Shown in pieces: positions 16,562 through 45,082 of a stretch of 64,000 bases of DNA. Every line of letters begins with the position of its first letter. The first letter of the stretch is position 1. The position numbers and the translations under genes were made by a program. Location: NCBI RefSeq assembly GCF_006345805.1, contig NC_043007.1, positions 74,896,001 through 74,960,000 of the forward strand, in the 5' to 3' direction. This DNA comes from Octopus sinensis. Its lineage: Eukaryota. Under the pieces are notes generated by a model. The model was given only the letters and a program-made list of their open reading frames with translations, did no database searches and was not told the DNA's origin.

Positions 16562-16734
16562 GGACAGAACCATCCAGTCTGAAATAGATCACAAAATGAA
16601 TTTAGAAAATATTCGACGTCATGAAATGGACATTGAAGAGGAGAGAAATGCTTATGCTGATATGCCAGGCCAGAACTACAGCGATGCCAATATAAGTGAT
16701 GCTTCAGTTGAAAAAGGAAGCAAAGTAATTGCTG
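16562..16734 (+). CDS. RyR: RyR exon (SPRY2-SPRY3 linker): DRTIQSEIDHKMNLENIRRHEMD...GSKVIA
   Basis: tttttag acceptor, g|gtaagt donor, open frame, phase 2 to 1 bridges flanking exons; sequence itself is divergent. Confidence 0.85.
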
Positions 16735-18291
16735 GTAAGTAGATTCTACTTTCTTTGCTTGTTACCATTTTGTTTCTTTTCTTTATTAAAATACGGCTTT
16801 TAGAATCTCTGACATTATTAAATGACTAACTCACATTACAAGGTTTTCATTAATACTTTACCTGTTTCATAACAAACAAATGGACTCTTCTCACAAATGT
16901 TCTGTACAATTAATTACAGCATGTATCTGTTTCATTAAAATATCTCACTTTTTATTGTTTGTTTTTTTTTCAAATACTAAATTATTAACAAAAAAATTTA
17001 ATCTTGTGAGAAAAACATTTTTGTTTATTCAAGGTTGATCTCCAGAAACAAACTAGCTGCAAGTTTTGCTGCTTTTGATTCTGCTGCTTCAATGAATAAT
17101 TTTGATTTTATTTAATTGTAAAATACATAATTAATCTAATAAATGAAGATTATTAAAGATAATTTTTCATTCTCTGATTTTGAACAATTCTTTCTAAATA
17201 AATTGCTTCTCAAGCTTGTATTGCATGTCTTCTTCAGAATAACTGTACTATTTTCCTGATATTGATTTGAGATATTCTTCTTTAAAAAATCTACACATTT
17301 TTTTTTTGTTTATAATTTTATTGCTTTTTTTTTAATCTTATTTTTCACAACTACCTGCTTGAAGCATTTCATATTTTTAACTTTCTCACTTTCTTGGTTT
17401 TTATAACATATATTGTCATACCTTTACATATACATTCAAGTAGAAATATTTTTATAAGCAGCTTTGAAGTTTAATTACTTAATTTAAGGCCAAAATTATA
17501 GTGAATAGAAACTATTCTTAACGTCATTTCAGCTAATTGTTTTGTAACTATCCTGTCCATGTACACAACAAAGAGGTTTGGGAAAGAATTGAACCTGGAT
17601 CCAAAGCACCAGAACGTTTAAAAACCTCTCTTTCTTTCTAAGTCAAATTTTTAAAAAATCTTAGTTAAAATAAATTACAGTAACAGAATATTAGTAATAC
17701 TAACTATAGTTATGGTAAATATGTTCTGGCTTGCCCTTAGCAGAATTTGTAATAGAGAGAGACAACAATAATAGATTGAATTTTAATATTGAACTCCAGC
17801 CATTATTGGAGTTATATATATAAATCTAACAAGTAAAATGTCTGATTCATTATTTAAAGTAAATATTTTTTGGTATTAAAATATAATCTACAATTCTGAG
17901 AAACTTTTGCAACAGATAATTTTAGAGTGTCAAATACTTCAGTTTGCTTCTACGCCAAATTGAAACTGTTCATTTCTCAAAGCCACATTCGCTTCAACTA
18001 ATAGTAGTGGTATTTCTCTGATTTCTTTAACAGAATTGAATCTATGAAAAACTACATTTCTTTTTTTTTTATTTCCCCACTTTATAAATTATAAAACATA
18101 ATTCTCATTATTGATTTATATTTCAGATCAAACATAATCTGAATTTTAACTAACTGCACTTCAAATAGTGTATGCTATTTCCTTTAATTGGTGACTAGTT
18201 TATAGATTTAGTGCTTAATTGTCAACTGATTTTATTAGAACTAAATCAGAATTAAATCTTGTAAACCAGTCACCAAGTCCAGAATATATAT

Positions 18292-18341
<50 letters not shown>

Positions 18342-18568
18342 CCACACATATACATGTACACATCATCTAATAATCCATAACTTAAAAATAATGCAGGCCT
18401 TCATACATTTGTCAATAGGGTATGTCAATATTTATACTTTACAGTAATATAGATCCATTTCAGCTGATTTTACCAACCAGTTTCATGAGCTCCATCTTAG
18501 GTTAATGCTGATTGCCTAATTTGTGTACAAAACTTATTAGTAAAATCAACTGAAATAGATCTATAACA

Positions 18569-18605
<37 letters not shown>

Positions 18606-18611
18606 TATATA

Positions 18612-18950
18612 TGGGGTACTGAGAAGCAATGTCATATTTTATGTAATGAGTTCAAATCAGCATGAAACATATTGTAAGTATATTTATTCATTCAAACAAT
18701 AATCACCATCACTAGCAAAAACATTTTCTCATCTCAAAACTAGTTTTCTGATTCCTTGAGTTAAAAAAAAATCAGGGTCTTTAGAAGAGGAAAGGGTTTA
18801 GAGTGACATTTCAAAATCATACTGACTTCTGAATTTTTTTTTTCTTTCTCTCTTGGTAAAGTTTTCCTGTGACCTGAATAAGTAAAAATCTGATGGTGTT
18901 AGGTGTCTGGTGAGTTGGGTGAGCAAGGTAAAACTTCTTAGCAAAATGAA
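18612..18950 (-). mobile_element. mariner transposase C-terminal remnant with terminal segment
   Basis: HLTPSDFYLFRSQEN...KKKFRS..DFEMSL...SSKDPDFF matches the mariner PDLAPSDY.LFRSL C-terminus; flanked by a TA run. Confidence 0.75.
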
Positions 18951-19009
18951 TTTATCTTTTCTTGAGTTACTTTGTTGAATGCCCTGCTTTATTCTCAGGG
19001 CACAGCTCA

Positions 19010-42091: not shown

Positions 42092-42132
<41 letters not shown>

Positions 42133-42599
42133 CATACACACACACATTTATGTCTGTATGTGTGTATGTATATATGTGTGTTTGTGTCTTCTTATCTTGA
42201 CATTGTGCAATAGTTGTAAATGAATGTCACTGTCATACAAGCAGTGTCTTCATGCCTAATCTTCTGTGGAAACAGGTTTAGTCATGAGGAAATGATATCT
42301 TGCTTGGAAAGAGGCGAGAGCTGGCAACAGGAAGGCCATTTACCTGTAGAAAATCTGCCTTATAAATTCTGTCTGACCTATGCAGGCCTGGAAAAGTAAA
42401 TGTTAAAGTTATGATGTACTCTATAAAGTCTCAAAGAAAATTCCCCTTCAACTGCCACTGTAATAAAATTATACTAATGACTAGGTTGTAGATGTGTCAT
42501 AATACTTAACTCTTTAACTAGTTTCAGTTTGAGAGTTGTGGCCATGTTGGGGTACCACTTTTAGCTTTGCTATACCTTCACTACTTGAAACCTCCTCTA

Positions 42600-43020
42600 A
42601 TATGTGGAATTTGGTGAATGAGGGAGTTTGATGCTGTTGCCCTCATCTGTTTTTCCTGCTGTGAGGTAGGCTCATCTGGAACCCTTGATAGGAAGAGATC
42701 CAGTTTTGTTTTGAAAACACCTGCATCTATGCCATGCAGGTCTCACAGGATTTTTGAGAGGATATTGAAGAGTTGTAGGTCCTTGAAACCCAAGCTGTTG
42801 CAGTATCTGGTCCTGTATTCTGATGGCAATGTAGGGATTTTTGACACTATGCAGTGATACCCCGAAGAGAACACCTCAACACATCGTCATTGCCATCTTC
42901 ACTCTCTTTTCCAACAGGGGTAGAATGTATCTCTCTTGCAGTGAGACACCTGTTCCTTCATCTCTATCATACTTTAATTTCTCATCACCAGGTATAAAGC
43001 CCCCCTCCCTCTATACTACT
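42600..43020 (-). mobile_element. CR1/L2-group LINE 3' remnant
   Basis: NSLGFKDLQLFNILSK..FKTKLDLFLSRVPDEP...SNSLIHQ on the minus strand. Confidence 0.75.
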
Positions 43021-43648
43021 CCTCATCTCATTTGAGAGATTTTGTCTTGCAAGTTATTTGGAAACCTCATTGGTGTTGGTGTCATGTAGACAAAAATGCC
43101 CAGTCCACTCTGTAAAGTGGTTGGAACTGGGAAGGGCATCCAAATGCAGAAACCATGCCAAAGCAGATATTTGAGCTTGGAGCCATCCTCTAACTCATTG
43201 GCTCCTGTCAAACCATCTTGTCTATGCCAGAATGGAAAACAGACATTCAATGATGATGATGATGATGATAAAGCTAATTTTGTGCAGTGATTTATTATGC
43301 ATGTTTTCTTCAACAAACCCATCCAGCATCTGTTGTTTTTTAGATATTTACATGTTAAATACTTATGAAAATTACCAAAAACAGCAAGACCTTATATAAT
43401 GAAATTACATTGAACCTTGATTCGTTATCAGTCTATTTAGTGATAACACAATATTCTCATATTTTTATCCAAAGACAAATTACTTTGAAAATGTTTTGTA
43501 CCAAGTTTGAATATTTTATTTTCCATAGAAGATCCAAACCCTTTTACACTCAATGCCTTCTATAGCAGCTCTTGATATTTGCCATCTTCTTGTCAGCACA
43601 GAACATGCTCAGATGGGTACTCTTGGCCAAGTTAAGCACTGCCTCAAG

Positions 43649-43815
43649 TAGTAGTGTAGCTAGAGTGTGTGCTGCCCAGGTAGCCCTTCAGTTTGCTGCC
43701 CCTCAGCCCCCACAAAAAATACATATTGCCTACAGCAGACCCAAAAGAGTGCCACCCCCAGAAAAGTACCACCCGGAGTGGACCGCCCCCTCCACCCCAT
43801 CTAGCTATGCTAGTG
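43649..43815. mobile_element. hAT-like MITE (167 bp)
   Basis: 15-nt imperfect TIRs tagtagtgtagctag / ctagctatgctagtg; 8-bp flanks gcctcaag / gtctcaag (7/8). Confidence 0.75.
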
Positions 43816-44304
43816 GTCTCAAGTCCTAGGACTCATTGGGTCAGTTACTCAGTTTTCCTGGTGTATAAATGACTGAGATCACAATATTTCCCCCTGGATA
43901 GGGTGCCAATTCATCGCAGAGTTACTCTCTTATGGCTGAGTGGACAGAAGCAGCATAAAGTGAAGTGTTTTGCTCAAGAACACAACACCAACTAGTCTAT
44001 GAACCAAAACCATGATTTTGCAATCATGCATGCAACACTGTAACCACCAGACCCTGCACCCTTATCACTAGGTCATGCACTGTCACTCCAGGTAAAGAAT
44101 CATTGCTTTAAAGTACTCAATACTATCATGAAATAAAATGAAGGTGAATATAACAATTACATGTGTTTTAAATGGTTATCACGATTCTTCTACAATGTTA
44201 TGGTTAGTATGTTTGAAGAAATTGTTGAGCCAGTTCTAATAAAACTGAAACTTCAAAGTTCTATTTCTTATAATGGAATGTTCTTTTTATTTTGATTTTC
44301 ATAG

Positions 44305-45082
44305 CACTTCATCATGACTATGCTGGTGACGAATCTCTGTCTGATGCTGATCAAAGAAGAACATCCTTTTTGAGGAACAAAAATGCCCACCATTCTTTAG
44401 ATGAACCAACTCTGCATGATTCTAGTCTTCCCGGCATGAAGACTGCAGCGAGTGAATCTCATTTGGTCGACGGTTATTTAGGAATTGATAATGAGAGAAA
44501 GAAATCTACTTCCAAACTTTCTCTTTTGGCTGAAAAACTCAGTGATCCAAAGGCCAGCAAAGCAGCTAAAAATTCCAAGTCACCATTTGCAACACTGTTT
44601 CGAAGATCAAAATCCAGGGAACCTTCTCCAACTCCTCGAGATGTGAAATCTAAAACACTCGATTCATTGAAACCTGGCAAACTTGGCAGGTCTCAACGCT
44701 CCAACAGATCTATAGCTGGTTCTCAGAATATGCATAAGGGTGATGTGGAAGGTGGCAGCCCTGCAATTAATATCGAAGGTCCTGATGGATTGATTCCATA
44801 TGAGTTTCAGGATGTCAAAGATATACACCATGGATTCAGCAATGTCTCTATGGGTTCCGACTATGAAATGTCCGAGGCTGAAATTGCTGAAATGAATGCC
44901 TTGACTGAAACAATGCATGAATATTACTATTCTGTACGCATCTTCCCTGGGCAGGACCCCAATCAGCTATATGTTGGTTGGGTCACCCCTGGCTTTCACA
45001 TGGGAGGCAGGTCCTTCGATATGAAGAAGATCAGGAATGTCATCATCTCAACCCAAGATGTAGAATATAAATACAGACAAAG
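44305..45082 (+). CDS. RyR: RyR large exon (778 nt): Ser/Lys/Arg-rich linker then SPRY3 (YYYSVRIFPGQDP...VGWVT)
   Basis: ttttcatag acceptor, ag|gtaatc donor, phase 1 to 2; matches ORF 44292-45086. Confidence 0.95.

Follow-up and report, generated by a model that had tools for sequence, protein, structure and literature searches.

Muscle and neurons release intracellular calcium mainly through the ryanodine receptor (RyR), a channel for which most invertebrates have a single gene serving all tissues. A 64,000-nt stretch of the Octopus sinensis genome (contig NC_043007.1, positions 74,896,001 to 74,960,000, referred to here as the window) contains part of a RyR gene of this single-copy invertebrate type, on the + strand. 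Two consecutive exons of our gene model, numbered 13 and 14, lie 27,570 nt apart in it, while the remaining 25 introns measure 215-2,176 nt. Is this interval, which interrupts the coding sequence of the linker between the SPRY2 and SPRY3 domains, one empty giant intron, or does it hold exons by which the gene could vary its product? An earlier note on this DNA had described the gap, with all other introns under about 2.5 kb, as a single intron holding two exon candidates of 36 and 19 amino acids (aa), which combinatorial splicing could turn into up to four tissue-specific channel variants. The gap and the intron sizes agree with our measurements. The interval is not an empty giant intron: the longer candidate, exon A, splits it into at least two introns (10,572 and 16,890 nt), or three if the shorter one, candidate B, is real, and the claim of one 27,570-nt intron has to be abandoned. 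As a whole, we consider it likely that the linker consists of four phase-1 modules, candidate B probably being one of them, with exon A as a regulated cassette.

Gene model and candidate exons

Exon-sized matches were located with a mammalian RyR1 stretch, which served as a lead only, and exon borders were placed at AG/GT sites picked through a phase-consistency search. Twenty-seven phase-consistent exons were joined in this way, with no in-frame stop. RyR-specific modules (RY repeats upstream, the Jsol/helical region downstream) lie on the same strand and in one reading chain of this 27-exon model, and homologous loci receive the Pfam assignments SPRY, RYDR_ITPR and RYDR_Jsol. Both exons that border the interval are recognisable elsewhere: the exon 14 acceptor position is common to loci L001 and L040 and to many homologues, and an exon 13 homologue ending ...GSKVIA G/gt (a slash marks the exon border) was found in four other genomes (L002, L003, L007 and L009). 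Direct joining of exons 13 and 14 reads ...GSKVIA-A-LHHDYAGDES..., and their positions (Table 1) confirm the distance between them.

The candidates had been put forward without coordinates; AG...GT segments open in phase 1 were therefore enumerated across the interval. This returned 872 open phase-1/phase-1 segments of 30-300 nt and, because so many are present, the mere existence of candidate segments is not significant. Among the open segments of 108 nt and 57 nt, only 27307-27414 (exon A) and 38103-38159 (candidate B) were exon-like, so that both proposed candidates, with phase 1 at either end, could be recovered. Splice sites were scored with position weight matrices (PWMs), for which the 27 acceptors and 26 donors of the window itself were the training set, and ranked within pools of 1,490 AG acceptors and 1,541 GT donors. 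The codon log-odds per codon amounted to 0.34 for A and 0.39 for B, compared with 0.05-0.46 for true exons, and both scores fell within the top 4-6% of 547 decoys. Neither A nor B lies within sequence repeated elsewhere in the window. A and B rise above chance through splice-site strength and codon score, and A also through cross-species conservation. The junction codons were those announced (G/CA Ala, A/CA Thr and T/CA Ser), further ones being formed at the 5' sides (G/AT Asp; G/CT Ala or A/CT Thr), and all four combinations of exon 13, A, B and exon 14 keep the frame.

Exon A as a coding exon

An exhaustive HMMER search with the open reading frames (ORFs) around A and B matched one protein, P0028 (locus L039), a 50-aa ORF with 88% identity to the query. 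The contig around it, 60.6 kb long and from a related species (L039/L040; ENA ERZ21867824, contig ctg95579l), also carries an exon 14. This exon 14 encodes protein 83% identical to that of the window, and the two species have diverged so much that its synonymous sites have reached saturation (pS 0.74). The orthologue of exon A in L039 is likewise 108 nt long and shares 33 of 36 aa; of its differences, 13 are synonymous and 3 non-synonymous (pS 0.52, pN 0.039, omega 0.044). The other two frames contain stops in both species, and in them all but about half of one difference alter the residue. In pN, exon A is on a par with the SPRY3 core (0.031) and three times lower than the rest of the linker (0.117).

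The conservation is confined to the exon and its immediate surroundings. Comparison of the window with 20 kb of the related locus, even at permissive settings, left the introns without alignment, and the sole non-repeat colinear match was a 181-nt block of 84% identity, made of exon A and some 35 nt of either flank. Exon A keeps its acceptor AG and its donor GTAAGTAGATC in the related species, and the residues encoded 5' of its acceptor are unrelated between the two. More distant genomes point to the same place. When the 64 kb are translated in six frames, D[TA]L[RK]R[LIVM] has a single match, located at the acceptor of exon A, against 0.003 occurrences expected per shuffled interval. The start of exon A is also the best window match of the A-type exon found in four other genomes (see below), and its C-terminal half aligns with the Ser/Thr-rich end of these longer exons. 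Because of the conserved block, the kept splice sites and the frame-specific synonymous bias, exon A is almost certainly a genuine protein-coding exon under purifying selection. The 36-aa candidate is thus upheld as an exon, accompanied by the conserved intronic motifs described in the next section, and gene models joining 16734 straight to 44305 would lose a conserved exon.

Intron size was also compared between the two species. In the related species, exons A and 14 are separated by 29,986 nt, versus 16,890 nt in the window, and exon A follows exon 13 at a distance of more than 10 kb. Large intron size is common to both species, and intron content is wholly turned over.

Signs of regulated splicing at exon A

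Rbfox proteins bind the motif (U)GCAUG, and two copies of it precede exon A, followed by a weak polypyrimidine tract and the acceptor (Table 1). The approximately 38 nt before this acceptor are near-identical in the related species, while the remaining intron is unalignable. Five of the six sequences (the window, L039, L002, L003 and L007) carry TGCATG between -20 and -27, precisely at -26 or -27 in L002, L003 and L007, two of these having a second GCATG about 10 nt further up; in all, a second GCATG was found at -36 to -39 in four of the six. The background density of TGCATG in these loci is 0.2-0.6 per kb, and the chance of meeting it in a given 10-nt window is therefore 0.002-0.006 per sequence.

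The splice sites of exon A are of unequal strength. Its acceptor has a PWM score of -0.5, under all 27 constitutive acceptors (leave-one-out range 0.2-14.0), and its donor is strong (rank 18 of 1,541 GT). Synonymous sites of exon A are less diverged than those of exon 14 (13/25 vs 126/170, Fisher p 0.03). The introns flanking exon A are 5-50 times longer than the others of the gene, and both A and B have a length divisible by 3 with equal phase on both sides, which means that skipping keeps the frame. The weak acceptor, the conserved (U)GCAUG pair, the conserved synonymous sites and the long flanking introns together give the profile of a regulated cassette, and we infer from them that exon A is quite likely to be one, used alternatively.

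More distant genomes: the same layout with a microexon

A deeper comparison was made with L002, L003, L007 and L009, the exon 14 homologues with enough upstream DNA, the short contigs L001 and L013-L017 ending before the upstream exons. In these four genomes, the exon 13 homologue ends ...GSK[VM]IA G/gt, exon 14 starts ag/G[AC] ATG AG, and the distance between them is 3.3-7.9 kb. When closely related pairs were compared over this distance, the conserved blocks were just an A-type exon and a microexon. The A-type exon measures 225-258 nt, begins D[TA]LRRLVN after AG and ends ...SS A/gtaagt, in phase 1/phase 1. What makes exon A recognisable in the four genomes is the shared position and phase, along with the D[TA]L[RK]R[LI] start and the A/GTAAGT donor.

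The microexon, of 24 nt, precedes exon 14 and reads ag/A[TC] GA[AG] GAT GA[TC] TT[GA] TC[AT] CT[CG] ACA G/gt, which encodes (N or D)EDDLSLT; all 6 variable positions are synonymous. Together with its intronic flanks, it is 84-89% identical, compared with 65-79% for exon 14. Exon 13, the A-type exon, the microexon and exon 14 are joined at phase 1 throughout, and all four combinations of the A-type exon and the microexon are in frame in each of the four genomes. In a more distant lineage (L008 and L015), no conserved block was found between the exon 13-like and exon 14 sequences.

Candidate exon B

Candidate B has a strong acceptor (rank 16 of 1,490) and a strong donor (rank 31 of 1,541), and comes second of 874 short symmetric open candidates by splice score, the first being microsatellite-encoded. 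It shares order and phase with the microexon of the other genomes. The HMMER search that did find exon A returned nothing for B. Whether B is a real exon is, on these data, evenly balanced: the 19-aa candidate is sustained by its splice sites, codon score and open frame, and not by cross-species support.

Two other sequences were considered in connection with B and rejected. Position 1274 of L040 (ag/ATGATGACTTTGGG..., encoding DDFGVRH) was discarded as a B orthologue for its poor splice scores, the lack of a symmetric strong donor and the lack of flanking similarity. The 11-mer ATGAAGATGAT at 38384-38394 follows a T-run, 225 nt downstream of candidate B. It matches the start of the L002/L003 microexon exactly over 11 nt and has no usable in-frame acceptor; this match is probably a coincidence, since about 0.69 such 11-mers are expected by chance. 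A word-index protein search with the ORFs around A and B came back empty, a result that is uninformative for short ORFs because the same search missed P0028.

The linker and vertebrate divergent region 2

The position of the linker was determined by a search of solved structures. Residues before it align to RyR2 1200-1314 (RyR1 1187-1298), and residues after it, in the SPRY3 part, align to RyR2 1424-1625 (RyR1 1432-1633), with E 1e-86 for the RyR2 match of both flanks and RyR3 chains matching too. The end of SPRY2 and SPRY3 thus align to RyR in the correct order, and these alignments with RyR1, RyR2 and RyR3 chains bear out the naming of the gene as RyR. Between them, 263-264 aa align to no solved RyR and fall between RyR1 ~1298 and 1432 (RyR2 1314-1424), in agreement with the earlier estimate of an interrupted linker of about 265 aa.

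Because its flanks align to RyR1 and RyR2 on both sides, the linker lies at the place of vertebrate divergent region 2 (DR2), as had been proposed. DR2, whose range we take to be about 1342-1403 in RyR1, is largely absent from RyR3. Judging by the aligned flanks, the octopus linker is the positional equivalent of DR2, and the correspondence is in position only: its 264 aa showed no sequence similarity to vertebrate DR2 when compared with the solved RyR structures. A Pfam search of the linker residues returned no family. The linker is probably disordered and built from four phase-1 modules, namely exon 13, exon A, probably exon B, and exon 14.

Proposed mechanism and alternative explanations

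Mechanistically, exon A would be a cassette whose weak 3' splice site is overlapped by the conserved (U)GCAUG pair. A factor of the Rbfox type would bind both motifs and block recognition of the branch point or of the 3' splice site; exon A would then be skipped in factor-rich cells, typically muscle and neurons, and included elsewhere. Upstream UGCAUG indeed favours exon skipping, while downstream sites favour inclusion (PMC5840707), and Rbfox proteins also control microexons (PMC4317164). Inclusion of exon A would add 36 Ser/Thr/acidic residues to a surface-exposed linker, and B would add 19. Such residues may alter the length and charge of the linker and, likely, its phosphorylation or partner-binding sites, leaving the SPRY folds untouched. 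The small exons would be surrounded by large introns filled with transposable elements and microsatellites. One gene thereby probably makes channel variants that differ in a flexible linker, and the specific scheme of four isoforms, with A and B combined freely, appears rather doubtful.

Several observations weigh against a linker with regulated cassettes. The PWMs that single out the exon A acceptor were trained on just 26-27 sites. L009 is without the upstream TGCATG and has one at +42 instead, and what is conserved upstream of exon A may be a branch-point region, or a site bound by another factor. A protein search with the four-module linker gave only genomic single-exon ORFs of exon 14 and zero spliced products; every homologue in the protein collection being a genomic ORF, it provides no junction evidence, and a metagenome scan with exon 14 returned distant invertebrate RyR fragments only, with no close relative. 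As regards B, the distance between exons A and 14 in the related species, compared over 10 kb from either end, yielded no orthologue, which by proportion would be expected in the middle ~10 kb, outside the compared 20 kb; and B resembles the microexon just by (x)DD and a hydrophobic residue at the acceptor, a likeness expected 0.26 times by chance. One alternative is a constitutive exon A (and B too, if real), in which case the gene would have two or three large introns, one linker form and no switch. Purifying selection and deep conservation are equally expected of a constitutive exon. No collection searched yielded transcript-derived sequence, and skipping was seen in no transcript; exon symmetry is weak evidence because 9 of the 27 constitutive exons here have a length divisible by 3. 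Yet a constitutive exon A seems unlikely to us in view of an acceptor weaker than every constitutive one, of the conserved motifs and of the reduced synonymous divergence. It would also leave aside the microexon of the other genomes, whose flanks are better conserved than the neighbouring constitutive exon, and the unusual length of the introns around exon A. In addition, the same linker is a proven hotspot of alternative splicing in Caenorhabditis elegans (PMC7644089).

It could also be that only exon A is real, with B as a chance open segment next to a T-rich microsatellite and at most two isoforms, a possibility to which we give slightly less than even chances. The polypyrimidine tract of B does come after an ATT/T-rich simple repeat, neither L039 nor L040 provided an orthologue, HMMER found no match, the resemblance to the microexon is of the order of chance, and 0.1-0.3 open pairs of a strong acceptor and a strong donor are expected by chance in the interval, as estimated from splice-site counts. 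By contrast, B is surpassed in splice score only by the microsatellite-encoded segment, by codon score it belongs to the top 5% when set against decoys and to the upper end of the range spanned by true exons, and its place after A is the one predicted by the A-then-B layout in the four other genomes; the 20 kb compared in the related contig, moreover, leave out the stretch where its orthologue is expected. An interval in which both candidates are chance ORFs of a repeat-expanded intron, with 16734-44305 as the sole mRNA junction, would fit the 872 open segments, the intra-window repeats that make up about 20% of the interval, and the many microsatellites. Exon A is nonetheless excluded as a product of chance by its frame-specific purifying selection, by being the sole alignable block in 20 kb and by the homologous exon in four genomes, which makes this possibility extremely improbable.

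Comparison with known systems and significance

Splicing in the DR2 linker is not new in kind, since a precedent was experimentally shown for unc-68, the single RyR gene of C. elegans (PMC7644089). Its DR2-coding region is a splicing hotspot with exons 10, 12 and 13 (Marques et al. 2020, PMC7644089), exon 13 being enriched in pharyngeal muscle, and exon deletions alter behaviour (PMC7644089). The octopus locus resembles unc-68 as a single invertebrate RyR gene with small, putatively optional exons in a long, poorly conserved linker at the place of mammalian DR2, and in the conservation of exons and splice sites, seen here for exon A and in the worm within the genus. The authors of that work proposed that such splicing stands in for the paralogue diversity of vertebrates, and the same role is proposed here. 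The two cases differ in that usage, tissue specificity and phenotypes are experimental for unc-68, while the octopus case is known from genomic sequence alone. The worm exons also have no detectable sequence homology with exons A and B. The unc-68 authors argue for convergence (PMC7644089). Worm introns are small compared with the 6-11 kb introns around A and B.

Like vertebrate DR2, the octopus linker lies between the SPRY2-side strands and the SPRY3 core, is presumably disordered, and may vary in length and composition between isoforms. In vertebrates, this variation comes from paralogous genes, not from splice forms, and it involves a region with no sequence similarity to the octopus linker. 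The role of DR2 in excitation-contraction coupling, as cited within PMC7644089, is a result on vertebrate skeletal muscle and is not transferable here.

Insects, too, have just one RyR gene, whose optional exons, 12-45 nt long, are regulated by developmental stage and tissue (PMC3989282), and their SPRY2-SPRY3 linker is recognised as the divergent region IDR1 (PMC8301844). The alternative sites documented in insects are mutually exclusive exons within SPRY2 and optional exons in three other places: past SPRY3, between RyR repeats 3 and 4, and close to the RIH-associated domain; unlike the octopus candidates, none is reported there in the linker itself (PMC3342285, PMC3787966, PMC3989282). The optional exon of lepidopteran RyRs lies between RyR repeats 3 and 4, not between SPRY2 and SPRY3. 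For cephalopods and other molluscs, our literature search yielded no paper on RyR splicing.

Like Rbfox-regulated cassettes and microexons, exon A is small and symmetric, has a conserved (U)GCAUG in the adjoining intron and a weak splice site, and is flanked by long introns. It departs from typical Rbfox exons in that its motifs are unusually near the acceptor (-20 to -40) and may overlap the branch point. Within the A-type exons, the L009 lineage differs from the others by having its motif downstream rather than upstream.

A broader proposal, which we put forward as speculative and improbable at this stage, is that exon 13, A, B and exon 14 form an ancient two-cassette module of lophotrochozoan, or at least molluscan, RyR genes, gated by (U)GCAUG and yielding muscle, neuronal and other forms with different versions of the DR2-equivalent surface loop. 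If this were true then, together with the nematode hotspot, it would suggest that splicing-based tuning of the loop is ancestral to bilaterians, and vertebrates would have replaced loop splicing by paralogue divergence after gene duplication. More generally, if conserved cassettes tune the linker, by which the three vertebrate paralogues are told apart, in molluscs and nematodes, isoform diversity of this loop would be a general route to channel specialisation. Cephalopods would be good animals in which to test the function of the loop, because of their fast muscle and large nervous systems, and the conserved (U)GCAUG element offers a concrete handle for minigene work.

Other content of the interval and window

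Sequence with further copies in the window, up to 17 per family, accounts for about 20% of the interval, which also contains 45 tandem repeats, mostly di- to tetranucleotide. Ten intronic ORFs of the interval matched no Pfam family, the interval matched no Rfam family and contained no tRNA, and no nested gene was seen in it.

Table 1. Coordinates (positions in the window) of the exons, introns and other features discussed in the text.
Feature	Start..end	Strand	Description
RyR exon 13	16562..16734	+	tttttag/GG ... TGCTG/gtaagtag; gene model
Intron, exon 13 to exon A	16735..27306	+	10,572 nt; microsatellites, interspersed repeats
Conserved intronic element	27269..27306	+	GCATG (27269-27273), TGCATG (27286-27291), then weak polypyrimidine tract and acceptor ttttcctgggcag
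Exon A	27307..27414	+	108 nt, phase 1/phase 1; ...ttttcctgggcag/AT ACC TTG ... GGT A/gtaagtag; encodes (D)TLKRIAGGTSDSSTTESHREGSLNISDTTEKSDGG; donor A/gtaagtag
Intron, exon A to candidate B	27415..38102	+	10,688 nt; repeats, microsatellites, ORFs
Candidate exon B	38103..38159	+	57 nt, phase 1/phase 1; long T/C tract ...ctctag/CT GAT GAT ... AAA T/gtgagtcc; encodes (A or T)DDFFPRHINGGPELTLRK; donor T/gtgagtcc
Intron, candidate B to exon 14	38160..44304	+	6,145 nt
RyR exon 14	44305..45082	+	linker remainder and SPRY3 start (EYYYSVRIFPGQDP...); acceptor ttcatag/CACTTC, phase 1; donor ACAAAG/gtaatcct
Interspersed repeat family	20428..20890, 32090..32602, 33559..33790, 38628..38773, 39987..40391		up to 17 partial copies in the 64 kb
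Minisatellite	34440..34819		6.2 copies of a 61-nt unit (91% identity)
Minisatellite	32879..33072		2.1 copies of a 97-nt unit
Intronic ORF	36814..37122	+	...CPAD...YxxLxxxxKxLw...IPVIIGALG...
Intronic ORF	40934..41257	+	...CPAD...YxxLxxxxKxLw...IPVIIGALG...
105-nt tandem array	51677..52920	+	exon 18-19 intron; ~12 units; one frame open for 244 and 187 codons (KALVLVPHKRHYCWYHIKGTVAGVTLKTPVLVPHR...)
COX3 fragment	54140..54463	+	exon 19-20 intron; Pfam COX3, E 5e-5 and 4.5e-8

The interspersed repeat family also has copies in the RyR introns before and after the big interval and looks like a short interspersed nuclear element. The two ORFs listed in Table 1 resemble the C-terminal tail of ORF2 of retrotransposons without long terminal repeats, and had no Pfam match. 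Outside the interval, the fragment of mitochondrial cytochrome oxidase subunit III (COX3) is split by a stop of the standard code which, if TGA, would be read as Trp in the mitochondrial code; mitochondrial DNA appears to have been inserted into the nuclear genome here. The 105-nt tandem array has a raised GC content (~43%), and its Pfam matches are repeat artefacts with no matched stretch. In L003, at 12288-15482 downstream of exon 14, nine gene predictions of 84 aa each, mostly about 310 nt apart and near the SPRY3 exons, suggest a tandem repeat in an intron of that genome.

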